From Macrostomum hystrix (taxonomy: Eukaryota; Animalia; Platyhelminthes): 64,000 nt of DNA. The notes beneath the pieces were generated by a model. That model had not been told where the DNA came from, ran no database searches, and saw nothing but the letters and a program-made list of their open reading frames with translations. The translations under genes and the position numbers were made by a program. Where the stretch lies: contig CATNEN010000039.1 of assembly GCA_950097015.1 (NCBI GenBank), positions 930,001 to 994,000 on the forward strand, in the 5' to 3' direction. This document shows positions 567 to 54,600 of this stretch, piece by piece (position 1 is the stretch's first letter; every line of letters starts with the position of its first letter).

Positions 567-3500
567 CTAGATCTGTATATTCCCAAGTATACTGAACACG
601 GTGGCAAGCCTCTGCAAATAGCCTTCAAACCTCGCGGGGGGTCTGATTTGTCTGCGCGGACGGCTTGTCACTCCTTCCCTTTCTTCATTCTGTGCAATGT
701 ACATGCCTCCTTCTGAGGTGGCTGTTGCCAGACCCTCAGCTGTCCCTTCGCTTTCGCTCTCCTCTTCACTGCTCGTAGCCTCAGGCTCGGTGTGTGATTC
801 ATCCTCCACGTCTATCTCAGCTCCTAACTCCAAATCTTCTCCATTAATTTCACTTGGATTCCTCCTAAAGTGGCATTGCCATTCTAATCTGTCTTCTTCC
901 TCTTCGGATTCAACTTCATCTGTTAGAACAGATCTTCCCTTCTCCTTCGGCTGGCTTCCCCTAACTTTGACCTCTGTCTTCTTAGCTTTCTTCTCTGGTG
1001 CGGCCTGGCTTCCCCTAATTAATTCCTCTTGGGTCGAATTAGGCACAATAGTTATGTTGTCTCTGTGGACAATCATGACATTGCCCACTAGTTGTCCTTG
1101 CTCCTCCTTTTGCACACGAAACACTACATCTGAGATTTGCTCTATTACTCTGAAGGCTGATCTCTTTTTCCTATGAAATTTGTGAGATTCCTCACTGTCC
1201 AACTGTGGATTATTAATCAACACAAGACTTCCAACTGGGACTGTCTTAGGCAATTTGCTGTTTTTCGCAGACTCTTGTCTGTTACTGACAACCTTCTCCA
1301 ATTTTCTTTTGACAATGTCTCTCGCAATCTTCAATCGTTCGGCATGTTCTGTCACATAAGATGGATAACTGGCGAATGACTTTGGTTGGCTGATTTGACT
1401 GTCCATAGGCAATACTGCTTCCCGTCCAAATAACAGGTAGTGGGGAGTAAAGCCTGTGGTTTTGTTTACACTAGTGCGGACAGCAACTAATGCAGCTGGG
1501 ATCATAAGGTCCCAATCACTGTGATCTTTCTCAATGAGACAGGTTACTATTGATTTAATTTGCTTGTTAAATCTCTCCACCAATCCATTGCTTTGGGCAT
1601 GGTAGGGTGTTGTAAACGTATGCTTCACGTTGTACATTTCGCAAAAAGCTTTGAACTGCTTGCTAGCGAATGCCTTGCCATTGTCTGTGTGTAACCACTG
1701 ACATTGCCCATACTCTGCGAAGATTCTTTCCTGTAAGATTTTGATCACAGTATCTGACTTTTGATTTCTAGTTGGGAATGCAAACGGATATCGAGTGGTG
1801 CTATCCACAATAGTTAGGACATACTTGTGCCCTCTTTTGCTCTCTTTGGATAGTGGTCCTATAAAATCGACATGCAGGCGATGGAAAGGTTCACTGATAG
1901 GGAACGATTGCACTGGCGCCTGTATCGGATTTCCTCTTTTGCTTTCCAAGCACGGAATACACTCTGCGATATGGGCTTCGACTGCTTTGACCAATCCTGG
2001 TCTCCAAAATCTCTTTCTGACACGTTGGATTGTTTTATCGCGTCCCAAATGTCCTGCTAGTGGGCTATCATGCAGATCGCTGAGAACTAGCTTATCCAAG
2101 GACTGGGGCAGTACAACTTTCCAACTGTCATCTTCGCTAATGATTAGCATCTCATTCTCTACCTTCATATCCTCAAGGAATTTCCTCATCTTCTTCAATT
2201 CTGGGCTGACAATTTCAGGTAACTGGGGATTGTTCTCTCCTGATTTCTTCCATTCAATTAGCACTTTAATTACTGGGTCATCTCTTTGTGACGCAATAAT
2301 TTGCTCTCGTTTCAATGGGCTGGGTAAGAAATCGGTCAATAACTTCTCGCACTTGCTACTTGTTGCTTGCAGCATATTCTCACTCTCACTAGGATTAAAT
2401 TCTTCAGGAACTGGACTCGGAAGCGGAATGCTGGAGTCATGTTCAAGTTCACTGGGAATTCTCACCTCTCCTTGTCCTGAGATAGTAGACTGGATCCTGC
2501 TATTGGGATCTAACGTCCTTTTCTCTCCTTCACTTAGGGCAGTCTGGGGCTGTGTCAAGCTACATGAGCTATCATTAGCCTTAACTTCCTGTCCTGACTC
2601 TTCCATTACACTGCAGCTTTGCACTATCGGCTCAACAACTTGCTCTGCTTCAGGGACATCAGCTGGTCTTCTTGACAGACTGTCAGCGTTCTGGTTCTTT
2701 GCACCGCTTCTGTGTTCTATATCGAACAAGAATTCGTTTAGGCGCTCAACCCACCGACCAAGAATTCCTTGAGCTTCTGTTTGCCTTAACAGCCAAATTA
2801 TCGCCTTATGATCCGTTCTTGCCAAAAACTTCTTACCTAACAGGTAGAAACGGAAATGCCTCATGGCATCCACTAGGGCTAAGAGTTCTTTTCTAGTGAT
2901 AGGGTAGCGTTTTTCCGACTCTTTCATAGCTCGGCTGAAATAAGCTATGGGTCTCTCTATGCCATCTGATTGGATCTGGCTAAGTACAGCGCCAATACGG
3001 CTATCACTTGCATCGGTATCCAATACCATCTTCACCTTCTCGTCATCCACAAATTCGGGATACGCTAAGACTTCAGTGGACATCATCCGGTTCTTTAGCG
3101 ACTCAAACGCTTCGTCATGCTCTTTGCTCCATCTCTCTTGAAAGTTCTTAATTCCTTTCCTTGTTAGCTGGAAAAGGGGATGGGCAGCTTCTGCATAATT
3201 TTTAATGAAGCGGCTATAGTAATTACATAGGCCAAGGAAACTGCGCAACTCTTTTACATCTTTTGGCTTCGGCCAGGTCTTAATAGCTTCAATCTTCGTC
3301 TCATCCGTACGGATACCTTCTGTACTGATCACATGTCCTAAGTACTTTAACTCTCTATGAAAAAGGTTACATTTCTTTGGCCTTAGCTTCAATCCTGCGA
3401 TTATTAATCTCTTGAACACTTCCTTTAGATGGGAAAGGTGGTCATTAAAGTTCTTCGAATAGGTAACTATATCGTCTATATACGACATAGCAAATTGATG

Positions 3501-5315
3501 TTGAATCCCTAAAAGTACAAGATTCATGAGCCTCTGGAAGGTTCCTGGGGCATTGGACAAACCTTGCGCCATAACCTCATACTCAAACTGGCCTCGGGTT
3601 AAAGTAGAGAAGGCGGTCATGAACTTGTGTTCTTCCTTTATCGGCACCTGCCAATAACCAGAATTCAAATCGAGACTACTAAAGTACTGACTACCAGATA
3701 AATAGGTGAAAGTCTGATGAATGTTAGGAAGCGGATACGGAACATAGTTCACCTTCGAGTTTAACACTCTAAAATCGCTCACAATCCGTATGGATCCGTC
3801 CTTTTTCGGCACAATGACTAATGGAGTAGAATAAGTTGAATAACTGGGCCTGATTAAATTTTTAGCCAACATGTCATCCAGCTGTGTGTCGACTTGCTTT
3901 TGGAGATGGGGTGGTATTCTCCTAGTTGGGATCCTCACGGGAGTCTCATCCTTCAGTGAGATCTCATGTGTGATCAGATGGGTTAAACCCATATCCAACT
4001 CATTCTGTGAAAAAGCTTCACGATGCTCTTTCATCAATTCAATCACTGACTTCCTTTGATCATCGGTAAGATCTTGACCAATCTTGACCTCATGGATCCA
4101 CGCATCTTCCACAGTCTGTGTCTGATTGACTCGTCCGGTAGGTTGACTGACTACTTCTTTTTCGGCTTCGAAATATTTCAACTCACTTGCCTTCACTGGT
4201 TTGGCTAGGCCTACCAATGTTGACTTCGACAGCTTCACCTCAACTGAATTGTTATTCACAATCTCCACAATGGCGGAACCTTCTCGCATTGTGACTAGAG
4301 TGGGAGCCATCTCGACTGTCAATTCTTTGGCTTTTACGCCTTCGCCAATCATACTCACTGTCATAGGTGTTCCAAAATTGCACTCGGCATCTCTCGCCAT
4401 TCTCACTGAGATTCTCAATGCACTATTTGCAGGAATCACTACTTTCTCCTGAGTATACACTCTGCATACTTTTACAGGTAGATGAGTGAACTGCATAGGA
4501 ATGCTTGCTCCTTCATTTAGAATCAACATGCCTTTAGCAAGATGAATGCTATCACAATGTCCTAGGAAAAATTCCATCCCTAAGATATTGTCGCTTTCAT
4601 GTCCACACAAAAGGAATTCTATTTCTATCTGGATGTCTCCGAATCTAACTGGAATACAACTCTCGCCTTCCAATTGTACTCTGGTTCCGTCGAAAGTAGA
4701 GACTCGCTTGTCTGTACTTCTTATCTGTTCTGGCTTAAGTAATTTTGACCAAATAGATTTGCTCAAAAAGCTGTTCCTAGCCCCTGTGTCTAGGATAAAA
4801 TTAATTTCCTGATTCTTAAATTTTCCTACAATTACTGCTTCAAATCCTTCAGGTTTAATAAGTTCTAGTTTAGAATTAGAAACAAATACTTTGCGTTTGT
4901 TCTCACGTGTCCTTGAGTACTTTCCAGATGTTGCGGCGGCTGATCTCGGTGCTGATACTTCGGAAGCTGGTTCCTCCAGGATTGACATGCAGGGGGCTGA
5001 CGCAATGGTTGCTGATACAGATGCCGCTGGGGCTAACGCAATGGGTGCTGACGCAGATGGTGCTGACGCAATGGGTGCTGACGCAGATGGTGCTAACGCA
5101 GATGGTGCTAACGCAAATGGTGCTGACGCAGATGGTGCTGACGCAATAGGTGCTGACGCAGATGGTGCTGACGCAGGGTAACTCGATTGCTTTTGTGCAT
5201 TACGCAAATTCGACGACTGGGCTTGGTATCGCCGATTCTTAGAGGCCTGAGGTTCGAATCGGGGTTTACTAGAGGGGCGCGGCCTCGACTCTCGTCCCTC
5301 GATATTCAGTTTCCC
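567..5315 (-). CDS. pol: Ty3/Gypsy Pol polyprotein (aspartic protease, RT, RNase H, integrase), probably expressed as Gag-Pol by -1 frameshift
   Basis: LDTGA protease; LDLNSGYWQ and YIDD RT; LDTDASD RNase H; H-H-C-C zinc finger; HVDFIGP, TDNG and SNGLVER integrase DDE. Domain order PR-RT-RH-IN. The frame is open from the GGGAAAC heptamer at 5315 to the stop at 567. Confidence 0.97.
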   Translation of the reverse strand, partial: GKLNIEGRESRPRPSSKPRFEPQASKNRRYQAQSSNLRNAQKQSSYPASAPSASAPIASAPSASAPFALAPSALAPSASAPIASAPSASAPIALAPAASVSATIASAPCMSILEEPASEVSAPRSAAATSGKYSRTRENKRKVFVSNSKLELIKPEGFEAVIVGKFKNQEINFILDTGARNSFLSKSIWSKLLKPEQIRSTDKRVSTFDGTRVQLEGESCIPVRFGDIQIEIEFLLCGHESDNILGMEFFLGHCDSIHLAKGMLILNEGASIPMQFTHLPVKVCRVYTQEKVVIPANSALRISVRMARDAECNFGTPMTVSMIGEGVKAKELTVEMAPTLVTMREGSAIVEIVNNNSVEVKLSKSTLVGLAKPVKASELKYFEAEKEVVSQPTGRVNQTQTVEDAWIHEVKIGQDLTDDQRKSVIELMKEHREAFSQNELDMGLTHLITHEISLKDETPVRIPTRRIPPHLQKQVDTQLDDMLAKNLIRPSYSTYSTPLVIVPKKDGSIRIVSDFRVLNSKVNYVPYPLPNIHQTFTYLSGSQYFSSLDLNSGYWQVPIKEEHKFMTAFSTLTRGQFEYEVMAQGLSNAPGTFQRLMNLVLLGIQHQFAMSYIDDIVTYSKNFNDHLSHLKEVFKRLIIAGLKLRPKKCNLFHRELKYLGHVISTEGIRTDETKIEAIKTWPKPKDVKELRSFLGLCNYYSRFIKNYAEAAHPLFQLTRKGIKNFQERWSKEHDEAFESLKNRMMSTEVLAYPEFVDDEKVKMVLDTDASDSRIGAVLSQIQSDGIERPIAYFSRAMKESEKRYPITRKELLALVDAMRHFRFYLLGKKFLARTDHKAIIWLLRQTEAQGILGRWVERLNEFLFDIEHRSGAKNQNADSLSRRPADVPEAEQVVEPIVQSCSVMEESGQEVKANDSSCSLTQPQTALSEGEKRTLDPNSRIQSTISGQGEVRIPSELEHDSSIPLPSPVPEEFNPSESENMLQATSSKCEKLLTDFLPSPLKREQIIASQRDDPVIKVLIEWKKSGENNPQLPEIVSPELKKMRKFLEDMKVENEMLIISEDDSWKVVLPQSLDKLVLSDLHDSPLAGHLGRDKTIQRVRKRFWRPGLVKAVEAHIAECIPCLESKRGNPIQAPVQSFPISEPFHRLHVDFIGPLSKESKRGHKYVLTIVDSTTRYPFAFPTRNQKSDTVIKILQERIFAEYGQCQWLHTDNGKAFASKQFKAFCEMYNVKHTFTTPYHAQSNGLVERFNKQIKSIVTCLIEKDHSDWDLMIPAALVAVRTSVNKTTGFTPHYLLFGREAVLPMDSQISQPKSFASYPSYVTEHAERLKIARDIVKRKLEKVVSNRQESAKNSKLPKTVPVGSLVLINNPQLDSEESHKFHRKKRSAFRVIEQISDVVFRVQKEEQGQLVGNVMIVHRDNITIVPNSTQEELIRGSQAAPEKKAKKTEVKVRGSQPKEKGRSVLTDEVESEEEEDRLEWQCHFRRNPSEINGEDLELGAEIDVEDESHTEPEATSSEEESESEGTAEGLATATSEGGMYIAQNEEREGVTSRPRRQIRPPARFEGYLQRLATVFSILGNIQI
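4996..5176 (-). repeat. 15-bp coding minisatellite (ASAPS/ASAPI pentapeptides) in the Gag-Pol linker
   Basis: About 11-12 units of (gg)tgctgacgcagat / tgctaacgcaatg on the plus strand, in frame with pol. Confidence 0.9.
5268..5315 (-). promoter_or_regulatory. -1 programmed ribosomal frameshift signal
   Basis: Slippery heptamer G GGA AAC (5315-5309) directly before the gag TGA. The -1 frame is open into pol. A potential stem GAGGGACG...CGCCCCTC starts ~8 nt downstream. Confidence 0.8.
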
Positions 5316-6205
5316 TGATATCGGTACTGCTGCTGCTGCTGTGAGCTCTTGCAGTACTTGGCAATATGCCCAACTTTGTTACAGTTAAAACATGTCGGCG
5401 GAGGCCTCGACTGTTGCTGCGGCTTCAGATACGTCTTCGGCTGCATGAGCGGCTGAGGTGTTACCCTCTGGCATTCAGCCTTCCTCCTTTCCTGAATCAG
5501 GTCTTCAATCAGCTTCTTCTGCTTATTGATTTCATACTTCTGCCTCTCGATGGTCTCCTCCATCTTCTTATTCCGATCCTCGTCGAATTGCTCGTCTTTA
5601 ACAACTCGAACTCCACTCTTGTGTGACATATGCCACGCTGCTTCGATGCGTCTCAACATCCTTCTAGCCTCTTGCAGGCTGGCTGGCTGTGCAAATATTA
5701 ACTTTTCCCTAGTGTCGGAAGGGATTCTCGCTCCTTTAATGAACTGCTCTACTACTTCCTCCTCCCTTTGTTCTCCATTCATATTGGGGAATGCTTGCGC
5801 GGACAACTCAATCAAGGCATCTGCGAATGAGTCAACGGGCTCATTCCTCCCTTGCATTCTACCTCTAAATTCCTCCCTAAACTCGGCTGAGCTTCCTAGT
5901 CTTCCAAACCTTTCTACAAGTCTTTCCTTCAGCTCTTCGTAGGTTAGTTCTTCTGGCAAATTCAAACGTTGAACGGCTGCAAATGCAGTCGCAAGATCTA
6001 AGTTAGCTAATAGCTCATTCTTCCTATGCTCGTCCTGTTCTAATCCTTCATTGTCGCATCTCTGATCGAATGCTGTAAGCCAAATTCTAATGTCCTGGCT
6101 AGGTGTGTACTTTTGGATCTTTACATGTCTCATAGGTCCTAACTCTAGTCTGTTTCTTAGCTCTTCGGCTAACAAGCCAATAGCATCATTAATTCCTGCG
6201 GCCAT
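5306..6205 (-). CDS. gag: Ty3/Gypsy Gag (capsid plus CCHC nucleocapsid)
   Basis: 299-aa ORF with retrotransposon capsid-like WLTAFD...QGRNEPVDSFADAL and zinc knuckle CFNCNKVGHIAKYC; immediately upstream of pol. Confidence 0.95.
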   Translation of the reverse strand: MAAGINDAIGLLAEELRNRLELGPMRHVKIQKYTPSQDIRIWLTAFDQRCDNEGLEQDEHRKNELLANLDLATAFAAVQRLNLPEELTYEELKERLVERFGRLGSSAEFREEFRGRMQGRNEPVDSFADALIELSAQAFPNMNGEQREEEVVEQFIKGARIPSDTREKLIFAQPASLQEARRMLRRIEAAWHMSHKSGVRVVKDEQFDEDRNKKMEETIERQKYEINKQKKLIEDLIQERRKAECQRVTPQPLMQPKTYLKPQQQSRPPPTCFNCNKVGHIAKYCKSSQQQQQYRYQGN

Positions 6206-6254
6206 ACCGTTATCTTACTTTTAACTGACTGTGTGCTTTTAGCTGGATTTCAAT

Positions 6255-6410
6255 CCTTTACCGCTGACACCAAGTTGTCGTAGGCCTACTTCTTAACTCC
6301 CACTGCTTTCACCAATTTGTTGTAGGGCTCCCTACTTATCTTACAGCTGCCACTAAGTTGTCGTAGGCCTACCTTCTTAACTCCCACAGCTTTCACCAAT
6401 TTGTCGTAGG
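6255..6410 (-). promoter_or_regulatory. Tandem array of four [LTR 3' terminus CCTAC(G/A)ACA + 3 nt + tRNA-Leu-type PBS] units
   Basis: The terminus motif ends at 6402, 6359, 6318 and 6276 (41-43 bp period). The following 18-mers are TGGTGAAAGCTGTGGGAG, TAGTGGCAGCTGTAAGAT, TGGTGAAAGCAGTGGGAG and TGGTGTCAGCGGTAAAGG. Confidence 0.75.
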
Positions 6411-7990
6411 CTCTCTCCTCTTTGGGTTAAATATCACCGATACTCTTTTATTAAATATTAAAAATAGCTTATTTCACACCTTGGATTACCCTTTGAAATA
6501 ACTCTTAATTTCCCTTGTCTATGACTTAGTTATTCTTCATAGGCTAGCTATGTATCCTCTTATTGCATATGCATATATTGTTTAACTTGGCCAGATAGGC
6601 TGCTTTCCTTCCAAAATTGGTAGCGTTCTCACGAGTGTCCGAGCGGCAAGACACTTCTTCCTCTCCTTACTAACTCACAACTGTCTGGCTCTCTGGTTTG
6701 TTCCCAGTCTTTCAAGGCTTCCAATGGACTGAAGTTGCCCAACTTTGCACACAGTGCTGTTCCACCAATCAGGATTTTACCCTCAGCTCTTTAGTTTTAC
6801 ACTCTACTACGGCTTTTTTATAACTATCTCCTTCTTTATTCTTTCGAATGTTCACCAACTTGTGTATTATCACAGACCTGCTTTTCTCCCTCTCTCTAAA
6901 ATAATTGAATTCAAACACTGAGATTTATTCTCCTTTGTTTTCTCAGAACTGGGCACGGGGCACCGGTTAAGGTTTCGAGGGCTAAAATGCGCTTGTATTT
7001 ATACTAAGAATTGAGGTGGGTGACAAAGCATAATAAAACAAAGACAAAAAGATCGCGGAAAACATTTGGCGGTAATTCAAGTTAGAAATATACGATAAAT
7101 TTGGGCCTGCCTCAGTTTATTAACTATTACAAATTTGTGTGTTAGAACTTTCATGTCAAAAATAAGCAAGCCCCCTTTAAAATACAAAAATATTAATATT
7201 AATATATATATTATATGTTTGTCCTTTTCAATTAACTTATCAAGGGGCCTAGCTGCAATGAAATACTTGTTAAAGAATTCAAAGGGGTAAAGTCAAATGA
7301 CTTAAATGTTTCCCGCTCAGATAGAATGAGAATGATGCTCCAGTGAAAGCCCTTAAATTTTTTATTAAATAAATTGGGGGATGACTTGGTGCAGAGAGGT
7401 AAAAGAGCACAAAATGGGGTGGGCTGCCATTTATGGTATAGGGCCAATGGAAAGGGGGGTAGAATAGCAATAAGCAAGCTGGAAAGGAAAAGAATGTCAC
7501 AAAATATCAATTAATTGATAAAGGTGAATAGGAATAGTGGGGCAAAACAATTATAGGGAGGGGAAGAATCTTTTATTAAATCAATATGCTCACTTGCTCA
7601 GTTGCTCTATGTACATGCCACACTGTACATTGCCTAAGTGTACATTTCAAATCGCATCGCGTGACAATATATAATTCTCACTTTGGCCAACTTGGGCCTT
7701 AAGAGCTTTGTCGTGCCTAATTGTCTCGCTTGTTCCAACCTAACAATATTCATATAGATTTCACATACATACATACAGATAAATATGCATAAGGCTTTGC
7801 TAAGAAGGCTTTGCTATTGCTTAGTTAAGGATAAGTCCTAGCTAAACCAGATAAGCTTTTAGTAATACTTATTGCAAATAATAATAATAATATGTTCATT
7901 TCATTTTTTAGCTAGCTAAATTTGACATTTTATAAACTCATACAAATGTTCTTGAAATAATGGGGACTATAGGCCAATTACTACGATACA
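6402..7990 (-). mobile_element. Probable 5' LTR of the Gypsy element (5' boundary uncertain)
   Basis: Ends ...CCTACGACA at 6402 next to the PBS. Minus-strand TATAAAT at ~7003-6997 and AATAAA at ~6929-6924. An imperfect inverted terminus TGTATCGTAG lies at 7990-7981. The 3' LTR is outside the window, so the boundary is not confirmed. Confidence 0.5.
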
Positions 7991-9020: not shown

Positions 9021-9640
9021 ATTTGGTGAATGCAGCGCAGTGTGATAGATAAAGAAAGGAGACCCTAGCTACAACAACCTGCACGTGACATAATTGGAGA
9101 AAGAAAGCACAGTATAAGTACGACGCCTGGAACAAACTTTGGTGGCATTAGCGGAATAAATATCTCACGATAAGTGGGCCCCAAGATTCTTATGAACCAA
9201 AGAAGAATGCACCAAAATTAAATAATGGAGCTCCTTATGCAATAAGTACTGAGTTTACTGAGTATCTGAAGTAAGTAAATAGGCCTATCAAAATATCTGA
9301 TTATCTTTCATTGGTATGTGTAGCTATAGGTTCCCCGACAGACATTTTTTCACCTTTTACGAAAATTAAAACAGCCATCGATCGAGCCAAGAGATGTCTG
9401 ACTTTGACGCTAAACTCAGCTTAAAATAAACTGCATGCGGATCGAATTGTTTAGCTTGTGATTTGCTACTCCAGAAAAGCTGTGAAGAACATCACTGCAT
9501 CTACATTCTAATTAAATAGCACGTGTCCCGGATCTGTTCTATGCGATCTAACAATCGACATCGTGATGGTACATGTTGCAACAGAGAAAATAGTTGAGTT
9601 TGTTGCAAAGGACTGGAAAGTGTCTACTTTAAGTGTTCTT

Positions 9641-10298
9641 CAGCCAGTCCATCATCAGCCAGCCCATCATCAGCCAGTCCATCAGCCAGTCCATCATCAG
9701 CCAGCCCATCATCAGCCAGCCCATCATCAGCCAGCCCATCATCAGCCAGTCCATCAGCAGCCAGTCCATCATCAGCCAGTCCATCAGCAGCCAGCCCATC
9801 ATCAGCCAGTCCATAATCAGCCAGCCCATCATCAGCCAGCCCATCATCAGCCAGCCCATCATCAGCCAGTCCATAATCAGCCAGCCCATCATCAGCCAGC
9901 CCATCATCAGCCAGTCCATCAGCAGCCAGTCCATCAGCCAGCCCATCATCAGCCAGCCCATCATCAGCCAGTCCATCATCAGCCAGTCCATAATCAGCCA
10001 GCCCATCATCAGCCAGCCCATCATCAGCCAGCCCATCAGCCAGCCCATCATCAGCCAGTCCATAATCAGCCAGCCCATCATCAGCCAGCCCATCATCAGC
10101 CAGCCCATCAGCCAGCCCATCATCAGCCAGCCCATCATCAGCCAGTCCATCAGCAGCCAGTCCATCAGCCAGCCCATCATCAGCCAGCCCATCATCAGCC
10201 AGTCCATAATCAGCCAGCCCATCATCAGCCAGTCCATCAGCAGCCAGTCCATCAGCCAGCCCATCATCAGCCAGCCCATCAGCCAGCCCATCAGCCAG
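9641..10298. repeat. 12/15-bp minisatellite (CAGCCAGYCCATCAT)n
   Basis: Directly visible tandem array with CAT/AAT/CAG variants. Confidence 0.97.
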
Positions 10299-10652: not shown

Positions 10653-11070
10653 AATGTGTATAGGCCTTTGTATATGTTGATATATGTTGACAATGTTGAT
10701 TCGACAAATTAAACAGAAATCCTTGTCTATATAGGTGTATAGGTTCTTTTCGATAACAATAGCTTTTTACCGTACACCAGTACATGTCCGAGTCTGAGTG
10801 GATTTCCCGGTTCGACATGGTGCTGGGCAACCAGATCGGTGAAAGCGGTACCTGATCCTTCAAAGACACTCCTTGGGTCGCCACGGGAACAAGCCGGGAC
10901 CTGCCACCAAAAGCCTCCTAGATCAGTTGGAAATGAATTCCCCAGGAGGTCCCGTCGTCAGATTCAAAGGGTGTCGGTATAGCTTGCATTGTGCTGCATC
11001 AGATCGCCAGCGATAATTGGGTGGCAGAATTGGCAAATGTTTGACAATCTAATTGATGTCACCTTTCGAC

Positions 11071-11320
11071 GTCATCAAATCTGCTAATCAAACAGTTTCC
11101 AGTCATCAAATCTGCTAATCAAACAGTTTCCAGTCATCAAATCTGCTAATCAAACAGTTTCCAGTCATCAAATCTGCTAATCAAACAGTTTCCAGTCATC
11201 AAATCTGCTAATCAAACAGTTTCCAGTCATCAAATCTGCTAATCAAACAGTTTCCAGTCATCAAATCTGCTAATCAAACAGTTTCCAGTCATCAAATCTG
11301 CTAATCAAACAATTTCCAGT
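11071..11320. repeat. 31-bp tandem repeat, 8 copies
   Basis: (gtcatcaaatctgctaatcaaacagtttcca)8, nearly perfect. Confidence 0.97.
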
Positions 11321-11873
11321 GGCAGTCAAAGTTGCTGCCAGGAGCTCACTGGTTCAAACTGAGCAATTAAAAAATGGCGGAAAAATCTTATATACTAGTT
11401 GAGTACTCAGTAAATTAGATTATTTATAAAACTATATTGTGAAAATCTATTTGCTGACGCAAGTGTTTACACAGCTCTAAACATCCAGCTATTATCGAAA
11501 AGCAAACGCACATTTATGGCAAAAACAAGCCGAGCCTTGAAAAACAGCTTGACTAGGCCAGCGACAATTATAATCACGAAAAATAAGACAGTTTGAGAAA
11601 AAATGCGCCACACACTTGTGAGCTTGTGTGGCGTTTGAAACACTTGCAGAAGCTACGAAATCACTGCTTTGATTGCTATGCGCAGACAAAAGAAATATGA
11701 GAAATTCGAGCTGCAGTCAATATTTGATATGCAAATTTAAAATTATATAAGATTATCTGATTTGCATCAGAACATATTCAAAACTGTAGTTAGAATGTGT
11801 TTCCTCACAGGCTGGTGAGCCAGTGAATGAAGCCGACATTGCTAGGCTGCACAGGCGCGTGAAAGAATTCCAT

Positions 11874-36800: not shown

Positions 36801-39800
36801 TTTCGGTCAATCCTCAAGAAGCTAAAACGATCTCAGACGCGCTGGCTGGAACACGACAACAGCCAAAATCAGAAGAGGACGAATTTTTTGAAAGACTGGA
36901 TAAGGCGGACGGCTTGACCGAAGAAGAGCTGGTAAAAGTGGCTCAGCTGATGAAAATGGACCAGGAAACTGCGAGAGCTGTGGCCAGGTTCCTTGTTACT
37001 CAACAGCCAGGAAATGAGGGAGCTAGCGAAAGCGACGAAGAGGAGACAGGGAAACACGACGAGACCGACGCCCCAGCCGATGATGCTGCGCTTTCTGACG
37101 CGGAGTGGGAGCGGCTCCAGAGTCGCTACTTTGACGGTACTGACGAGTTTCGGTTTGTGCGGCCTTTGAGGGATGCTGCCGAAGTCGGTGACGGCACCGA
37201 GTCAGCCATTAGTCGTGGATCATCAGGCGCGACGGGTAGCGACGTTCGGCGTCGGTTGCGCGACTTCAGCGATCTGCTGCTTGGCTTCGACGACGTCAAA
37301 GATGACGCCTCGGTTGGTGATGATGCCGCATCGGAACGCAGCTTTGACGTAGAGTTGATGCGCGCCCGCTTCGAGCGCCTATTAAGCTTCTCCGACCGCG
37401 CTTCCATCGTCTCCTCGGATCACACAAGTCTCGCGCCGTCCTCCATTAGCGGCACGCGCCGAAGACGTCCGGTTGGAGCCGTAAGCATCTCACGCACGTC
37501 ATCCCGAGCCGGCAGCTTTGCCGCTGCGGCAGCTGCAGATGCTTTAACTCCTGGAGATTTGTCGCCACAGCCAGTGCCACACCCGGTTGGACGGCCTGTC
37601 CGACGCGCGCAATCGGATGCACTTCGTAGCGCCACGCAACTTAAGCAGATCGTCCAAATTAAACGAATGATTGAACGTCGGCGTCAACAACAGCATCAGC
37701 TTGAGCAGGAGCGGCAGCAACACAGCGGACCATCGGCGGATCATGAAACATCTTCCGCTGCTGCCCAACATCGCATTTCAGATGACAACCTGGCGCCCGG
37801 AGGCACGCACTCCCCGTCACCACTGTCAGCCACTGCATCAATGCCGCCACCCACCGTGGTGGTTGTTGAGCCGCCACCGGAGGATCTCATAGAGGAAGCA
37901 GCGATACTAACCCAGGATGCGCAAGCAACAAAAGTGGAAGTAGCAGCAGCAGAAAATGCAACACTGGTAGATGCTCATAAACAGCTGGAGCGGCAGCAGC
38001 AGCAGAAGCAGCAGCAGCAAAAGCATCCACTATCAACTGCCGGTGAGGTTAGAATCTCGCTGTCAGATTCAGCAAGTGGCACTCTGACTGTTCGGGTGTT
38101 CGAGGCCCGCGGCCTTCCAGCTGGCGATACAAAGAGACTGAGGACAGACAGGTAAAGTGGAAAATCTATCCTATTTTTCTTATTTACTATTATGCTAAGA
38201 TTTCTCTGAGAGAAGCTCTGAGCAGTTTACCACGGGAAATTTTTAACAACCTGCATTGTGAAATTTTTGTTATACTTTTACAGCCCCACGAAAAGCCGTA
38301 TAGGTCTTCAAATTGCGGCAAATTTGTAGCTGAAAAAAATTGCACAAAATGAGTTGCAAATTTAAACATTGAAGTTTGAATATTTAGAGGGTGGCAATTA
38401 GGGAGGACCGGAATCATCTCTCGAAGCATTTAGCGACACACAGCAGAAAAGGCTTGCTCGCCAGACTACGATGCGATAATTAGAATGAGTGAGCTGCAAA
38501 CTCGAGTGCAGCCAGCCAAACTCCAGCAATGCCGACTCGAGTGCAGCCAGCCAAACTCCAGCAATGCCGACTCGAGTGCAGCCAGCCAAACTCCAGCAAT
38601 GCCGACTCGAGTGCAGCTAGTCAAACTCCAGCAATGCCGACTCGAGTGCAGCCAGCCAAACTCCAGCAATGCCGACTCGAGTGCAGCTAGTCAAACTCCA
38701 GCAATGCCGACTCGAGTGCAGCCAGCCAAACTCCAGCAATGCCGACTCGAGTGCAGCCAGCCAAACTCCAGCAATGCCGACTCGAGTGCAGCTAGTCAAA
38801 CTCCAGCAATGCCGACTCGAGTGCAGCCAGCCAAACTCCAGCAATGCCGACTCGAGTGCAGCCAGCCAAACTCCAGCAATGCCAACTCGAGTGCAGCCAG
38901 CCAAACTCCAGCAATGCCAACTCGAGTGCAGCCAGCCAAACTCCAGCAATGCCGACTCGAGTGCAGCCAGCCAAACTCCAGCAATGCCAACTCGCATGCG
39001 CCCCACATGTCTCTCATCCTCTTGTTATGGTTCTCTTGGCCAGATGAGAAGCGACGTCCGTCCAACTAATTGTCTCATCGAGCCGCAATGTTTCAACTCT
39101 TGAGGCCTGTGAAGATTTTATGCTCTGAGCTTCGCTTTGAGCCCACAGAGGACCGTCCGCCATTTGACAGGCAGCGGATATGAAAGAGCCGCTGCTGACC
39201 CGAGTGAAATCTGCCAGCATTGCCGTCATTATTGTTCCGCCAACCCCAACTATTCAGGCTTCTGATTTACGAGCCCAGAACTCGCACAGCTAGATTTGAT
39301 AGAGAAAACTGGCTTTAGATAAATCAATGTTCGAAGCAGCGCGAGTCCAAGCCCTTGGGCCATAGCAGCATTCTCATAGCTAGCTCGAAAGCAATATGTA
39401 GAAGTGCTATGCGAGTATGAGCACTATGAAGGCCAAAAAACACTCTGCATTGAATAGATAGAGAAGTCTCAGGCTCGTGCGTGTGTGTGCGTGTGCGTGT
39501 ATGTGTGTGTGTGTATGTGTGAGTTATTCTGACCCAGACAAAATTGAACTGAACCGCTCCTCCATCTGGAAACAGCCAAGTCGGGCTCTCGGGGTGATGA
39601 ATGCGCCAAGGAATGCAGGCCGCCTCATCGCATTGTCTCGAGCTTCTATTTTTAGCTCGCACAGCGCTACCCAGTAGGTCAGTGGGTGGGTGAGTTGTGC
39701 TATGCGGCCTGCTCAGAGCACAACAAGCTGCAAGCGAAGGCGAGCTCAATTTCTGATCTGCCAGACCTGTTGCAGAGGCGGCGCCAGCTTAGAAAGCGTC

Positions 39801-45120: not shown

Positions 45121-46930
45121 GCTTCTGTAAAAAACTGCTAGAAAATTCTAATTCTCATTTATTTTCGGATCAACCGCTTACATTAGCTCAAGCTGGGCCA
45201 GTGCCAATAGTAGTGCAACTTTATTCGAAATTCGATTGCAGTGTCACTGGAAATCGTAGATAGTTGTCCTTCAGTGCTTCAACTCACTTGACTTATCCGC
45301 AGGGCGGTCCGAAGACGCGGCGAGTGTTGTGCATTCCGCTAATTCCTGAATCACCCGCTTCTGCACAGGGCGCGGGGGCAATCAGGGAGGTCCGTCAGTC
45401 CTTCCTATGGCGTGGTCCTCCTTGGGGAAAAAAGAGGCCTGTCTGTTAGCCCTGAGGAACCGGACGAGCCGTGGGATGTTCTCGGATCTGCAAATGTCGT
45501 CCATTGATGGATTTGGTCCGAGTCGGTTTAGCCTCTCCCTATTAAAGAAATAGCATTGGCAAACGAAGTGCAGGTATCTTCGTTTTCGAGGTTACAGAAA
45601 GGGCACGTTACGTTCCGGAGGTCTCCCCGGAGGAAGCAGTGCCTAGCGTAGCAGCCATGGCCTGTGGGGGTCACGTGAGGCCAGGGAGTCAGCGCAAAGC
45701 CTTTCAGATTTCAACTCATAACAATGGACCGCTGCTTATTCCAGTTGGACTCTGGTTATTTTTCTTATTAAAACTGGCCCTCCGAACTGCAGCTGACAAA
45801 GTTGACTTTAAGTGCAGTGAGGAACTCGTGCGCTCGACCGCAATCTCTTCAGTTCACTGGCCTCTTCCAGTGGAGCTCTGGTCGTCTGCGGTGACAATCG
45901 AATGTCTATGGCCGAACCCTTCGGCGCTCGATTTTGTGAAGCCTTGAGCCGCAAGCCTCAAGCAAAGCATGCTAATCGGAATTCATCTTAGGTGGTTTCA
46001 CACGTAGAGTATTTACATATCGTTTTTTAACGCAAAGTATTCACCCCTGCTTTACAGCTGCTTAAAATGACAGTGAACTTATATGAGAAAGCCATAATTA
46101 TGTGCCCTTTTTCGAGTTAAATAAATTAAATATTATTTTCAGAACTAATAAAAGCAACTAAAACTTCCCTGGCTGATTAATAAGTACTCAATTGCTTTCT
46201 TTCGAAGTTAAACCTGAGAAGTATATGACATAATTACATGTGCAGTAACTGCGGTCGGTTACGTTTACTTCGAGTAACCGCTAAAACAGGCGTTAAGACG
46301 CTCTGCTTCGGCCTGGCACTGGGTGGCGTTAGGACGCTCACACAGTACTTGCAGTAGTAACGTGTTATAATAGGAGAGCTACTAACACAGGCGAGAGGTC
46401 GCTCTAGCAGGGACAAATATAAATAAGATTGTAAAATTAATGCAGACAAGGCACTCCGAAAGGAAATACGCGAATGCGGTGTAGACGCAGGTGAAGACGC
46501 AGACGCTCTGATGAATTCGATACATTTGGTTTGGTTTCGCTGGTTTGTATGGTATGCAATCTATTGAGACGTGCCAGTAAGAGGCCGTCTTTACGGCTCA
46601 AATTCTAAATATTAGACACGAGCGAAACGGCACGGGCAGGCAATGCTACTAAAATTAGGGCTGCTACCTATAGAGTGCGGCAGTCAGCAGGCGCGAAGCC
46701 ACCAGCGCGCAGGTAGGGGAAGGGTTGCACGCCCGGCCAGGTTGACGGGCATGGTCACCCAGAACTGATTGACAGGAGCGGCAAAGCCACGTAGGGCTGG
46801 GGGTAGAGCAATAGACTACGCCCGCGCCCAGCCAATCAGGAGGTGGCGCGGGGCACGCAGAGCTGGGAACAGGAGGGAATGGCGAGACAAAGGCCTAGCA
46901 ACCTCAACCAAAACTGCCCAACAGCCTCAA

Positions 46931-47258
46931 TTCCATTCCATTCTATTCCATTCCAGTCCATGCGACCCCATTCGATTCCATTCTATTCCATTTCATTCGA
47001 TTCCATTCTATTCCATTTCATTCGATTCCATTCTATTCCATTTCATTCGATTCCATTCTATTCCATTTCATTCGATTCCATTCTATTCCATTTCATTCGA
47101 TTCCATTCTATTCCATTTCATTCGATTCCATTCTATTCCATTTCATTCGATTCCATTCTATTCCATTTCATTGCATTCTATTCTATTCCATTCCATTATA
47201 TTCCATTCGATTCCGTTTCATTCCATTCTATTCCATTCCATTCTATGCAATTCCATTC
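46931..47258. repeat. (ATTCC)n-derived satellite with a 25-bp higher-order unit
   Basis: (ttcgattccattctattccatttca)n core flanked by simpler ATTCC repeats. Confidence 0.95.
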
Positions 47259-47681
47259 TGACCTCAGCTGTGCCGGTAGATTTCACTATAGTTTTGGTTT
47301 CGGTTGATTGAGTTAGGGGCGAGTTTGAGCACAGTGAGCGCGCAATTCTGCATTCAGCAGCGGAATCATCGACTTTGCGTATTTGCGTGTTAATCGAGTT
47401 ATGTAAACAAAAAAACCTTTGCGCGGAAAGCTGGACTGCTAGGTCATTGTGCGTGAGAACTGAAGGCTTAAATAATCAGAATGGTATAAATCGAAGTATA
47501 GCCTGACAAAAGCTATAATGTTGTAGTGAGTAGCACAGCATGAGTTGTGCTAGCAGTCTCATTAAACAAGTCAGTTTATTACGACTTGAGGGGAAACACA
47601 TGAGCTTCTAACAAAATATTGACACGTTCTCTGCGAGCTCAAATATCTCTTAGGTTGCGTATTCGGTGTGAGGTGACTAAA

Positions 47682-48138
47682 GTGATGAGAGGGAGTGGGG
47701 TGGCTGAAGTGATGAAAGGGAGTGGGGTGGTTGAAGTGATGAAAGGGAGTGGGGTGGCTGAAATGATGAAAGGGAGTGGGGTGGCTGAAATGATGAAAGG
47801 GAGTGGGGTGGCTGAAGTGATGAGAGGGAGTGGGGTGGCTGAAGTGATGAGAGGAAGTGGCGTGGCTGAAGTGATGAGAGGGAGTGGGGTGGTTGAAGTG
47901 ATGAGAGGGAGTGGGGTGGCTGAAGTGATGAGAGGGAGTGGGGTGGCTGAAGTGATGAGAGGGAGTGGGGTGGCTGAAGTGATGAAAGGGAGTGGGGTGG
48001 CTGAAGTGATGAGAGGGAGTGGGGTGGCTGAAGTGATGAAAGGGAGTGGGGTGGCTGAAGTGATGAGAGGGAGTGGGGTGGCTGAAGTGATGAAAGGGAG
48101 TGGGGTGGCTGAAGTGATGAGAGAGCGGAGTGGCTGAA
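47682..48138. repeat. 27-bp G-rich minisatellite, ~17 copies
   Basis: (gtgatgaragggagtggggtggctgaa)n. Confidence 0.97.
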
Positions 48139-48679
48139 CTGACCCGGGAGTGACGCGGGAGTTAAACAGCAATGGTTGTTAAACAGATACAGTTACTATG
48201 GTTAATTAGCGAAATTAAAAATGGCGCAATACAAAATGATGCATTCAAAACAGCTTTAAAAAATCTGTTTGCCAGGCAGAATGGCTTAATTGCTATCTCA
48301 AATAATCAAGTAAAGCTGCAGATCGGCATCCCACACGCTTGGCCTTGCAAAACTCACTACAATTAATTGCCTTCTGTGAATATGGTTGTCTGGAACAGCC
48401 TGTCTGGCAGCCGCAAGAGTTTTGTGAATTCCGGCCGTCAGTTAAATTTACTGACAGCATTTTGGCAGTCCTCGTGATTTCTGTTGCTGACAGTCGGTTC
48501 GAATTCCCAGAGCTTAATAAATTATCATGCATGCGCTAGAGAGAAAAAGACGAGCATAAAAAATATAAAATATCCAGGAGCAGAAATGAACCTAACAAGG
48601 CTCGAAAATGTCCTAAAACTAGCGAAATGGTCAAGCAAGCGAGTTTCAAAGAAACGCAACCCGCTGGCTGCTAGGGGCG

Positions 48680-51600
48680 CTAACTGGCTGGAACCTGGCT
48701 GTAGATGCCGGTCATGACACCGACGCTGACGGACAAGAAGATCCAGAACAGCAAGCGGTCGACCAGCCGGGCCAGGGTCACCCAGGCCTCAGGACCGCTG
48801 CACACGCAGGTCAGCTGACTGAAGCCGTCAGGGGCTGCCGCACCTACATCGTCGGCATACCGCAGTCGCCGACTGCCAGCTAGTGTTGGCTGCTGACAGC
48901 GCCGGACGCGCTGTGGCGAAGCGTCGTAATCCAATAGCGACAGGTGGCTCGGCAGGCGAGTCAGCGGTTGCTGCTGCCGCGGGTCTCGACGGCCGTTGCA
49001 TTGCGCCGCATCGCCGACGCCGTTGTCGCCGGCCGGTGCTTCCTCGGACCCTCCGTGCTGGGGCAAGCCGAGACCCAGCAGTCGCCTGACGTTACCACCG
49101 CCGGGAGCTCCAAGCTGACGCCGCTCACGTCGCCGACGGAGCTGCCGGCAGGCCTCGCAGTGCCAGCGTCGCAGGAAGGCACGGATCAGCCGTGGTGGCA
49201 ACTGGCTTGGCGAGCAGGTGAACTTGCGCACGTGAATGTTGGTTACGATCACGCCCATTACCAGGGCCAACGACACCATCACCATGGTGACGCCGAACAG
49301 GACCCCTTTGGGGTAAGAAAGTCAGCAGAGGCAGGTAAAGTAGTTAAATCAGTTTAAGAGGTCGTCAAGATAAGAGCGCAAATTATAGAGACGACTCGAG
49401 CTACATCGAATAATAGTTGGGGGCCGTCGGCGCGAAATCACTATGCGAGGATTTTTGCATTTTCATATCACTGACCTCTCAGCACACGTTGCGCAGGCAC
49501 AAACTCACACAAATTTCTGCTATTAATATCACGGCCGTTGCTTTCTACATCGTCAGGCAGTGTACACCTCGGATATTGGTGAAGATTACCTAGCCTTCTA
49601 TCCACTACTGCGCCACCGATTTATGCACACCTCTGTGCTGATTAGGAGCTCAGGAACTCGCCGCTCCGCGACTCACACCTCGATGGTACGTTAAAAAATA
49701 TCATGATTTCTTTGAATTCCTTCGTTTCCAGTAATCCTGAGTAGGGGTCCCTTGGTTCAGAAATCAGCCTTTGAAAGAGCATAACTAAAAGTGCGCGCCT
49801 TCTGTCGCTTCAAAACTAATCCCCCGCCCACGAAGCGATGCTAGGCTGTGTCCGCAGAGTTGTCCCCTCTACGAAGTCCAACTAAAAGTGATTTTCCCGA
49901 GAGCCGCTTGTGGCCTGACAGCTGTCACATCGGGTGGCGCTGCTGCGCTGGGTGACTCGTCTTCCCACGGGAGAAATCTTGACTCTGGATTTGCGTTGCA
50001 GGGAAAGACCAAGATTTCAGTTGCGAATTTCTCGTCATTAACGCGGCACCATTTGACCCAGGGCTTCAGCTTGACAACTTTGCTGCGGTCCGTGCGCGTC
50101 AGCTGAAGGGTTGCGCACTCGGCACCGCAGTTAATGAGATTGTTTTGAGTTTAGGCATTGGGCAACTATGCGAACTGCTGTTGAAGGATTTCATCAGGGA
50201 GAGGCTGGGGTTGCTGTCCACACTTTGCCAGCGCTTCGCTCGCTCGTGTTTAGCGACAGCTCGCGGCTCAGCTGGGCTGCTGAAGAGCTCCTCCTAGAGG
50301 AAGACGGCTCGGAATCTTGACCGGCGCACTTGAGCGGATTGGGATGAGCCGATCGGTGCGGCCCGTCTTCCGCCCCCACTTAGCTGGGCGGTCTGCGCGC
50401 CTGAGCGGGCCGCCGAGAGCCGGGGGCCAGTGAGGGACTGGTTTGCGGTTAATCGCTAATAAAAGCTGAGCGAATTCTTTAGCAAACAGAAACTGGCCCG
50501 CCGTCTGTCGGATTAAGCGGGCGAGTCAGACGAGGCAGCTAATGCTTTGAGTCTCTGCGCCTGGCTTCCTGCATTACTAATACCCACGTACTCGAGCCGT
50601 TCGCTAGCAAACAAAAGTGGAAACTTCTAAAACTGCAGCTCAGATTAGAGTCCGGTTGTAGACTTTGCTTGAGCACTGTGGATTAGCGAAAGCCACTTTG
50701 AAACATCCCCAGACTCGGCAGAGTGGCCCCAGACTCGCAGCGGGTGTACATTTTTTGCTCAGATGTCCCCGAGGTGCAGCTTAACCGAAGATTATTGTAC
50801 AAATTTGCATCCTTCAGCAGAATCGCTTTATCCGCCGGCATCCGCCCTCGAGGGCCAATCAGATAACTTTCTGCTTCCAACGCTAATTATGCGGCCACAA
50901 CTCACCAACAAGCGGAATCGCATCCGGAGTTGGGGGCAGAGTGTCGCCCACGATGAGCAGAAACACCACCAGAGCGAGGAGGATTGTCAGCTCCAGGTTG
51001 ACCTTCTCGCCGCTCTCGATCGGCAGGAAGAACCCCAAGAAGCTGGCCAAGTACATCAGCAGGCAGGGAAAGATCAGATTGAACACGTAGAACAGGGAGC
51101 GTCTCGTCATGTCCACGATGATGGTGACATCGGGCCAGGGCTCCGGGCAGCAGGCGTAGTAGCCAACGGCCCTCTTGAACGAGATGCCGGAGACGTTCCA
51201 CTCCTGGTTGTCCTCCACGTAGTAATTCTTGTTGGCATCCACAGAGTCGTCATGCCACACGTCCACCTCGTGCAGGTGGTAAGTCCAGCTGATGAAGGTG
51301 GTCATGCAGGTCTGACGGTCGAATGGAAAGTAGCGCACGTTGAGGGTGCAGGTGACTTTGATGACGGCGGGGAACATCCACAGCACGGAGCCATTGCTCC
51401 ACACAATCACGTTGGTTGTCATGAACTTCTTGCTGCTCTCGTCTGCGCTGTGATTATGGGGGATTGCTCATCAGCTGTGATAATGGGGGATTGCTCATCA
51501 GCTGTGATAATGGGGGATTGCTCATCAGCTGTGATAATAGGGGATTGCTCATCAGCTGTGATAATAGGGGATTGCTCATCAGCTGTGATAATGGGGGATT

Positions 51601-54600
51601 GCTCATCAGCTGTGATAATAGGGGATTGCTCATCAGCTGTGATAATAGGGGATTGCTCATCAGCTGTGATAATAGGGGATTGCTCATCAGCTGTGATAAT
51701 AGGGGATTGCTCATCAGCTGTGATAATAGGGGATTGCTCATTAGCTGTGATAATGGGGGATTGCTCATCAGCTGTGATAATGGGGGATTGCTCATCAGCT
51801 GTGATAATGGGGGATTGCTCATCAGCTGTGATAATGGGGGATTGCTCATCAGCTGTGATAATGGGGGATTACTCATCAGCTGTGATTATAGGGGATTGCT
51901 CATCAGCTGTGATAATGGGGGATTACTCATCAGCTGTGATTATAGGGGATTGCTCATCAGCTGTGATAATGGGGGATTACTCATCAGCTGTGATAATGGG
52001 GGATTGCTCATCAGCTGTGATAATAGGGGATTGCTCATCAGCTGTGATAATAGGGGATTGCTCATCAGCTGTGATTATGGGGGATTGCTCATCAGCTGTG
52101 ATTATAGGGGATTACTCATCAGCTGTGATAATGGGGGATTACTCATCAGCTGTGATTATGGGGGATTGCTCATCAGCTGTGATAATGGGGGATTACTCAT
52201 CAGCTGTGATAATGGGGGATTGCTCATCAGCTGTGATTATGGGGGATTGCTCATCAGCTGTGATTATGGGGGATTGCTCATCAGCTATGATAATGGGGGA
52301 TTACTCATCAGCTGTGATTATGGGGGATTGCTCATCAGCTGTGATAATGTGGGATTGCTCATCAGCTGTGATAATGGGGGATTACTCATCAGCTGTGATT
52401 ATAGGGGATTGCTCATCAGCTGTGATTATGGGGGATTGCTCATCAGCTGTGATTATGGGGGATTGCTCATCAGCTGTGATTATGGGGGATTGCTCATCAG
52501 CTGTGATTATGGGGGATTGCTCATCAGCTGTGATTATGGGGGATTGCTCATCAGCTATGATTTAACCGATATTTGATGTCAATGTACTGTAACGTAGGCC
52601 GTGAAAGACATCTCTATTAAATAGTGTTTGGAAGCAGCCAAGGCATTGCACCTAACCAATCAATCAATGCCTAAAACAATAGCAAGATCAGCAGATAAAA
52701 ATAAAGCCAGAAATATCCTAGTGAAGATGTGTATGCAAGGTCAGCAGAAGCGCTGGAAAGTCGGACCAACTGCGCAAATTTAGCAGGGCTTCCCTGCAGC
52801 ACTGCACTGAGCTCAGGCAAATCAACTCTAATGCGGCAAGGCGGGGGCGGATGCGGTTCTGTACTAGTGTCCGGATGGGATGGCCAGCCACGCAGTCCGC
52901 TAGCACCATGATGGGGCGCATTCCATTCCAGCTGCCTCAGTTAGGCCTCTCTAACTTACTGCGGGCACTGAGCAGCAGGTGAACAAGCATTGAGGGATCA
53001 CTGTCCCGCATGGCTACAAACAGGCCATAAAGCTAAGGGACCGACTTCCCAACCACCTGAGGAGCAAAGATGCATGATGCTGCTGACGGAGGCTTATAAT
53101 CAATCTGCAGGTGGGCTATGAATTGTATGTTGAGGAGCAAAATTCCGACTGTGTCGCCCGCCTCTCCGTTGCCGCAGTTCCGGTGCCGTATGGAGCTGCC
53201 GCGGTTCAGCCCGCTGCAATCCATCACCGGCCCGGCCTGTTCTCCCTTTCCCCTCGCCCGTGCTGGGTTTCGGCGGAAGGGCTGATTTAATTGTATGCCG
53301 TGCAGGCAGCGGTTCTGCCCCCGCTCCGTGCCCCCCCCCGAACTGAACGCCAAATATGAGGTTATAGGAACTATTTTCTCTTATTTGATGCGATGACTCT
53401 GTTTGCGCATGTATTGAAGAGCTGTTGGTGTGCCTTGACAGGTTCGATGAAAAACCCTAGGACTCAGCGAAATTTGAAACTTAGCTGAAGCTTCTGAACA
53501 CTGCCCTGAGCTGAGCTTCTTCGCACAAGGGAGGCTGTTTTTCTACCGTTATTACTTTCTCGGCCTCTAAAGCTAAAGCACTTCTAAAGTTTCCAAGTCT
53601 CTTGAAACAAACAAATGCGGCTTATTTGCAAGGAAAAGCTGGGCAACCTTTTAAGACAGCGGGACGGGGAAGGTCAAGCATCCGGTGTGTACTCTGAGCT
53701 CTTGCTTTGAGGTCCTTGTAAGATCTAGCTACTCCGTGTTGAGCTCAGTTACTCAGGCAATGCTGGATCTGTAGCTAGATTTCTGAGCTCAGTTACTCAG
53801 GCAATGCTGGATCTGTAGCTAGATTTCTGAGTTCAGTTACTCAGGCAATGCTAAATCTGTAGCTAGATTTCTGAGCTCAGTTACTCAAGCGATGCTGGAT
53901 CTGTAGCTAGATTTCTGAAGTCAGTTACTCAGGCGATGCTGGATCTGTAGCTAGATTTCTGAGCTCAGTTACTCAGGCGATGCTGGATCTGTAGCTAGAT
54001 TTCTGAGCTCAGTTACTCAGGCAATGCTGGATCTGTAGCTAGATTTCTGAGCTCAGTTACTCAGGCGATGCTGGATCTGTAGCTAGATTTCTGAGCTCAG
54101 TTACTCAGGCAATGCTGGAGCTGTAGCTAGATTTCTGAGCTCAGTTACTCAGGCGATGCTTGATCTGTAGCTAGATTTCTGAAGTCAGTTACTCAGGCGA
54201 TGCTGGAGCTTTAGCTAGATTTCTGAGCTCAGTTACTCAGGCGATGCTGGATCTGTAGCTAGATTTCTGAGCTCAGTTACTCAAGCGATGCTGGATCTGT
54301 AGCTAGATTTCTGAGCTCAGTTACTCAGGCGATGCTGGATCTGTAGCTAGATTTCTGAGCTCAGTTACTCAAGCGATGCTGGATCTGTAGCTAGATTTCT
54401 GAGCTCAGTTACTCAGGCAATGCTGGAGCTGTAGCTAGATTTCTGAGCTCAGTTACTCAGGCGATGCTGGATCTGTAGCTAGATTTCTGAGTTCAGTTAC
54501 TCAGGCAATGCTGGAGCTGTAGCTAGATTTCTGAGCTCAGTTACTCAGGCGATGCTGGAGCTATAGCTAGATTTCTGAGCTCAGTTACTCAGGCAATGCT

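Follow-up and report, generated by a model that had tools for sequence, protein, structure and literature searches.

The 64-kb stretch of flatworm DNA analysed here (the window) contains, with a probability that we put at roughly 0.7, a young and intact Ty3/gypsy LTR retrotransposon that has one working primer-binding site (PBS), uses tRNA-Leu(AAG/TAG) as its primer and carries, as units 1–3, diverged copies of the junction between LTR and PBS. With its stacked junctions, the element is otherwise an ordinary LTR retrotransposon, but its structure is of a new kind.

Results

Repeat units at the end of the LTR

The minus strand of the window holds four head-to-tail units of 41–43 nt (6410..6242), which Tandem Repeats Finder detects as a period of 41 nt present in 3.5 copies (score 179, positions 6263-6411). 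The motif CCTACRACA occurs four times within 135 nt, against 0.46 occurrences expected in the whole window. As proposed in the initial annotation of this DNA, each unit consists of an LTR-end motif, a 3-nt spacer and an 18-mer starting with TGG or TAG, the units follow one another in the order A-B-A'-B' on the minus strand, and their anatomy is that of copies of an LTR terminus and a tRNA-Leu-type PBS. The same annotation placed all four units in the leader, which did not hold, since units 1–3 lie in the LTR (Table 1).

The limits of the LTR were set by its partner. No second LTR was found within the 64-kb window; the 3' LTR is located 1,020 bp before the window start (G000:C39:928142-928981) and shows 100% identity to window positions 7114..6276 (839 bp), the target-site duplication (TSD) AAAC flanking the two LTRs. 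The identical 3' LTR and the TSD show that the LTR contains units 1–3. Only unit 4 provides the LTR terminus and the PBS, its 18-mer being the one 18-mer outside the LTR. Because the AATAAA signal ends 37 nt upstream of the first LTR-end motif, the internal units would be situated in U5, with AATAAA as the sole marker of the R/U5 border.

The gag ORF, together with a pol ORF encoding protease, RT, RNase H and integrase in that order, identifies the element as Ty3/gypsy. The closest protein to the pol product is from Macrostomum lignano (70% identity), and a purine-rich tract containing GGGGAAG directly precedes every 3' LTR start, as a polypurine tract should. A third ORF of 397 aa (L002:2469-3662, minus strand), Q/P-rich and without a Pfam match, lies just outside the window between the pol stop and the 3' LTR and fills most of the 1.6 kb that separate them. 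The pol ORF itself has, at its start, about ten copies of a 15-nt repeat (window 5028-5176), which would encode a repeated pentapeptide between gag and protease. Long minisatellite arrays are also unusually abundant in the window, with periods of 10–44 nt and 15–40 copies each.

Table 1. Features of the element and minisatellite arrays, in window coordinates; (-) denotes the minus strand
Feature	Position	Description
TSD, 5' copy	7115..7118 (-)	AAAC, 4 bp; 3' copy outside the window, past the 3' LTR
5' LTR	6276..7114 (-)	839 bp, TG...CA; units 1–3 at its 3' (putative U5) end
LTR hairpin	6635..6654 (-)	Conserved; 5-bp stem, 10-nt loop
AATAAA	6447..6452 (-)	Likely polyadenylation signal, from sequence only; ends 37 nt upstream of the first LTR-end motif
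Unit 1 (type A)	6368..6410 (-)	LTR-end motif, AAT, 18-mer starting TGGTGAAAGC, tail; LTR-internal
Unit 2 (type B)	6327..6367 (-)	LTR-end motif, ACT, 18-mer starting TAGTGGCAGC, tail; LTR-internal
Unit 3 (type A')	6285..6326 (-)	Variant LTR-end motif CCTACAACA, AAT, A-type 18-mer, tail; LTR-internal
Functional LTR terminus	6276..6284 (-)	CCTACGACA; start of unit 4; the 3' LTR ends here, followed by the TSD
Spacer	6273..6275 (-)	ACT, from LTR end to PBS
Real PBS core	6261..6272 (-)	TGGTGTCAGCGG; the next base pairs too; 18-mer of the initial annotation extends to 6255
Post-PBS segment	6242..6260 (-)	Conserved, small hairpin; weak likeness to the complement of the tRNA-Leu T arm
Remaining leader	6206..6241 (-)	Up to the gag ATG at 6205
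gag ORF	5306..6205 (-)	299 aa, CCHC zinc knuckle
pol ORF	567..5207 (-)	1546 aa; protease, RT, RNase H, integrase, the Ty3/gypsy order (Pfam matches)
Minisatellite array	9594-10200	
Minisatellite array	11009-11380	
Minisatellite array	38355-39089	
Minisatellite array	46877-48204	
Minisatellite array	51312-52700	
Minisatellite array	53608-55139	
Minisatellite array	56059-56694	

Given the repetitive nature of the region, the array might be suspected of being an assembly artefact or a one-off local duplication in the window copy, as the initial annotation had allowed. Contigs from public runs (one study) span the array of units 1–3 (arrangement ABA) unchanged, and one such contig represents a form with zero units; the array is thus not an artefact of assembly. 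Of the public runs that contain this sequence, none is recorded as RNA. Moreover, more than 25 LTRs, spread over many contigs, contain these units, which are found in both LTRs of each copy as well as in the public-run contigs. With nothing but repetitiveness in its favour, we give this explanation practically no weight. Less remained of the secondary structure that had been suggested for the array. The palindromic junctions are present in the window copy, but CCTAC/GTAGG is kept in only about 8 of 13 A units and in 1 of 16 B units across the family. Stems of CCTAC/GTAGG closing each PBS are at odds with this loss of the palindrome and with the array RNA, which is predicted to be no more stable than shuffled sequences (z = -0.17).

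The working PBS and its probable tRNA primer

In the host genome, the tRNA-Leu(AAG) and tRNA-Leu(TAG) genes have the 3' end CCCACCGCTGCCA, tRNA-Leu(CAG) ends in CCCACTTCTGACA and the intron-containing tRNA-Leu(CAA) in CCCACCTCTGACA; no tRNA genes were found within the 64-kb window itself. The window PBS is complementary to Leu(AAG/TAG) at 12 of 13 nt and diverges beyond, and the same is true of Leu(CAA). Position 6 of the PBS varies among copies, being T, G or A. Two copies (L008 and L056) carry as their PBS an exact 19-nt complement of tRNA-Leu(AAG/TAG), and the replaced stretch ends at the 18-nt stop of primer copying, where the common leader sequence resumes. Reverse transcriptase stops copying a tRNA primer after 18 nt, and the 19-nt match looks like the footprint of tRNA-Leu(AAG/TAG) copied as the primer. 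Two sequences quoted in the initial annotation as tRNA-Leu PBSs do match the host Leu(AAG/TAG) and Leu(CAG) ends, but they are not the 18-mers of the units.

The LTR also contains a hairpin (GTGTC, 10-nt loop, GACAC) that is present in all related families, including L060-L071, with a paired change of the stem to GTGCC/GGCAC in L066-70. Its loop and 3' stem are complementary to nt 3–15 of the PBS, with a 2-nt bulge, and it is the best partner of the PBS in the LTR (predicted -20.1 kcal/mol, compared with -14.9 ± 2.1 for shuffles). Possible roles would be masking of the PBS, cyclisation of the RNA or self-priming.

Priming sites recorded in the LTR pairs

We took a census of 18 elements from the same genome with at least 90% identity in leader and gag, plus solo LTRs. 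The elements have between zero and three internal units in seven arrangements: ABA in one (the window copy), AB in four, BA in six, B in four, and A, BBB and none in one each. This comparison bears out the expectation that the number and order of units differ between family copies. The sole zero-unit copy with a gag start (L054, G000:C38:6339500-6349400) is defective: its 5' LTR measures about 117 bp, its 3' LTR 715 bp, and its interior is short. Two LTRs that are 100% identical and share the TSD CTAC lie 36 kb apart (L012 and L013, G000:C1:24680101-24680878 and 24643885-24644642); large insertions nested within this element, or a rearrangement of its interior, may account for the distance.

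During reverse transcription, U5 of the 3' LTR is copied from the 5' end of the RNA to the primer actually used, and the 5' side retains all units whichever primer site serves. The end of the 3' LTR is therefore a record of the priming site in the last cycle, since copying of U5 stops at the primer. Sixteen elements offer both internal units and two readable LTRs. In each of these informative pairs, the same array is present in both LTRs, and the LTR ends at the last CA, which is followed by ACT and TGGTG.CAGCGG. No internal unit primed the last cycle of any of these copies. A 4-bp TSD could be read in 15 pairs (the window element and 14 further ones), and full-length comparison of 12 pairs gave 100% identical LTRs in every case, showing that the family is active.

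These counts bear directly on the model of the initial annotation, a functional multi-PBS cassette in which each unit would anneal a tRNA-Leu isoacceptor, prime and yield an integrable, CA-ended cDNA. In its support, an LTR-end motif and a PBS-like 18-mer are retained in every unit, the A type retains TGGTG and forms a predicted duplex of -22.9 kcal/mol with tRNA-Leu, and a single mismatch separates the real PBS from the Leu(AAG/TAG) complement and likewise from that of Leu(CAA). The model had called for 3' LTRs that end at an internal CA, and none was seen among the 16 informative pairs; with 0 of 28 internal units used, the 0 of 16 pairs give a 95% upper bound of about 17% for internal priming per cycle. 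Units 1–3 lie inside both LTRs rather than in the leader, and conversion to tRNA sequence, seen for the real PBS in two copies, was found for none of the internal 18-mers. Furthermore, type B is mismatched opposite the penultimate base of the primer, reading TAG for TGG, and the internal 18-mers have no match among canonical host tRNA genes, as described below. Taken with these results, priming from several units appears very improbable.

tRNA matches and conservation of the internal 18-mers

The claim that each 18-mer is complementary to the 3' end of a host tRNA was not upheld, as no canonical host tRNA gene matches the internal ones. Searches for host tRNA genes whose acceptor end would match A, B or the T-variant PBS, by patterns that assume a TTCRA T-loop at the standard spacing, returned matches at background level only, or repeats that were rejected by ARAGORN. 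Likewise, a listing of all host genes with a Leu-type T arm contained no acceptor end matching A or B. The A and B 18-mers each match the complement of Leu(AAG/TAG) at 14 of 18 positions and differ from it at 4. Duplexes with the tRNA-Leu 3' end are predicted at -22.9 kcal/mol (A), -18.6 (B) and -20.5 (18-mer of the real PBS). Since A and B are predicted to match the real PBS in duplex strength, lost binding would not explain why A and B are not used. The best predicted duplexes of A and B both involve the same 3' end of tRNA-Leu(AAG/TAG), and a bipartite PBS of the Ty3/Gypsy type was rejected on this ground. Elsewhere in the genome, a 48-nt unit is repeated 14 times in tandem (L074:4223-4888, G000:C8:2846722-2847387) and has in each copy an intact 16-nt match to the complement of tRNA-Leu(AAG/TAG), with no adjoining gag or pol.

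Nucleotide diversity across elements is 0.014 for the B 18-mer and 0.040 for the A 18-mer, compared with 0.19 for the unit tails, 0.10 for the leader, 0.13 for third codon positions of gag and 0.017 for first and second positions. Variable sites number 4 of 36 in the two 18-mers versus 33 of 100 at gag third positions (p about 0.015-0.02), a difference that is only suggestive given the small sample and the common descent of the copies. At that strength, the sequences suggest that the internal 18-mers are not decaying freely; neutral decay of the additional 18-mers, which the initial annotation had named as evidence against its model, is not what we observed, given their conservation relative to gag third positions. 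A pure relic model fails to predict the low diversity of the 18-mers. The five bases that follow the B 18-mer (for example window 6341-6345) vary at every position, with 8 variants in 16 units, and the B 18-mer is almost invariant beside this variable flank. The flank could be either a mutational hot spot or the sharp edge of a constraint.

Overall, the internal units probably hold some secondary cis role in U5. Because the internal 18-mers are conserved, a role other than priming is possible, which might be the binding of tRNA or tRNA fragments or the spacing of U5 for polyadenylation. With regard to the first, the units could be selected sites that bind tRNA-Leu or its 3' fragments without priming, either docking the primer for packaging or acting as a sponge for PBS-targeting tRNA fragments. 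The 18-mers are conserved next to tails that vary freely, 14 of 18 positions are still complementary to the tRNA-Leu 3' end, and the replacement of TGG by TAG in the active lineages abolishes extendability at little cost in predicted binding energy. Against this stand the small size of the conservation test and the relatedness of the copies in it, the sister families that do without units, and the existence of copies with only A, only B or no units, so that we consider such sites unlikely. We are doubtful, too, about a fuller version, according to which the units would be selected, priming-disabled PBS copies, kept in U5 by predicted binding of tRNA-Leu or its 3' fragments as docking sites or anti-silencing decoys, and repeatedly gained through moves of the LTR boundary.

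Alternatively, the units may be modules that lengthen a native U5 that is very short, their GU-rich sequence giving spacing and a downstream polyadenylation element within the 3' LTR, independent of flanking host DNA. AATAAA ends just 37 nt before the first CA in the window copy, and only about 15 nt before it in the subfamily L055-57, which always has two units. At least one unit is present in all currently active copies, the zero-unit LTRs being old solo LTRs or belonging to the defective copy. However, related families with a single junction also exist as full copies, and lengthening of U5 leaves the specific conservation of the 18-mer unexplained; we regard it as a rather improbable explanation.

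Origin of the units

The A and B units align along their entire length with ACT, the PBS and the 19-nt post-PBS segment, covering all 31 nt of PBS and post-PBS segment, and share the end point of that segment. We propose a tandem duplication that spanned the LTR/PBS boundary, for which a misaligned template switch in the course of reverse transcription is the most likely cause. The duplicated block of 43 nt would begin with the final 9 nt of the LTR and run through the post-PBS hairpin, hence comprising the LTR-end motif, spacer, PBS and post-PBS segment (6242..6260). The gag-proximal copy would have kept priming, so that minus-strand strong-stop DNA copied the upstream units; both LTRs would thereby have gained them within U5, and their boundary would have shifted downstream. 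Template switching and recombination between co-packaged RNAs may later have shuffled, deleted and re-duplicated the units, giving the seven arrangements. The internal units would not act as primer sites; their 18-mers have nevertheless stayed near constant in the active lineages. A plain tandem duplication of 43 nt agrees with the lengths of the units. Plus-strand read-through of the tRNA T arm with re-alignment on CCTAC was rejected as a source, the predicted unit being about 8 nt too short.

The sequences of the units hint at their history. Type A keeps a tRNA-like GTGGGA and type B keeps GTAA..GAT of the common PBS, and the two types look like copies of two states of the PBS. Zero-unit solo LTRs (L029, L077-79) are old, with 82-88% identity to the LTR of the window copy, and older LTRs with one B unit (L080-82) still start it with TGG; all B units in full-length copies start with TAG. 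As read from these sequences, the order of events would run from zero-unit LTRs to a single B unit starting with TGG, followed by the change to TAG and the A units. Of the two A variants joined in the window array, one occurs in AB copies and the other in BA copies, as would be expected from recombination between co-packaged RNAs. In related families (70–78% gag identity) the junction occurs only once and shows the same PBS core and hairpin; in one such family, L065/L075, both LTRs contain a B-like unit.

Discussion

The fourth unit is exactly like a canonical Ty3/gypsy junction, which consists of CA, a spacer of 0–5 nt and a tRNA PBS. The window element resembles the canonical type in its TG...CA LTR, 4-bp TSD, 3-nt spacer, tRNA-Leu PBS, purine-rich tract and protease–RT–RNase H–integrase order, and departs from it in having up to three extra, diverged copies of the junction upstream, in U5 of both LTRs. 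In our literature searches we found no published description of repeated LTR/PBS junctions inside U5, and a recent paper on LTR elements of M. lignano does not mention primer sites.

Several known systems share part of this organization. In dual-initiation studies with engineered MLV and HIV-1 vectors bearing two PBSs, both sites are reportedly often used. As in those vectors, at least two PBS-like sites are arranged in series at the 5' end of the genomic RNA, and the site used sets the end of the progeny U5; in contrast to them, the copies are natural and diverged, and only the gag-proximal site has left a trace in the family. In the Drosophila element Gypsy there are two binding sites for tRNA-Lys2, of which cDNA synthesis needs only the 5' PBS (PMC1635307). 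The present family is similar to Ty3 and Gypsy in that the RNA of one element has several segments complementary to tRNA. In Gypsy and Ty3, however, the second site pairs with another region of the tRNA and is located at the RNA's 3' end, whereas the extra sites described here are paralogues of the PBS that adjoin it, each with an LTR-end motif.

In self-priming of the Tf1 type, the first ~11 nt of the transcript pair with the PBS, which matches no tRNA. Our element is comparable in that an LTR segment (6635-6654) is complementary to the PBS, but this segment lies about 380 nt upstream, the PBS starts with TGG and matches tRNA-Leu, and two copies bear tRNA sequence. Finally, direct repeats are gained and lost through template switching by RT in retroviruses and LTR elements. 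The units fit this pattern, being arranged head to tail with shared boundaries, varying in number and order between sister copies and forming arrangements that look recombinant (ABA from AB and BA). They differ from the known cases in that the repeated block straddles the LTR/PBS boundary, such that its duplication would shift the end of the LTR.

The proposed history suggests a simple route by which LTRs may grow and their boundaries move: the junction is duplicated, the downstream copy primes and the upstream copy is absorbed into U5. Annotation tools that look for a PBS directly after the first LTR-end motif will misplace the LTR boundary in such families. The tRNA sequence that forms the PBS of L008 and L056 would be a direct genomic footprint of primer copying, and if the conserved internal 18-mers do bind tRNA or tRNA fragments, they would represent a new kind of retroelement cis element. 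Seven natural variants of the array exist in an active family of a flatworm related to the laboratory model Macrostomum, and they thus provide a natural experiment in which a reverse transcription complex chooses one primer site among look-alikes.
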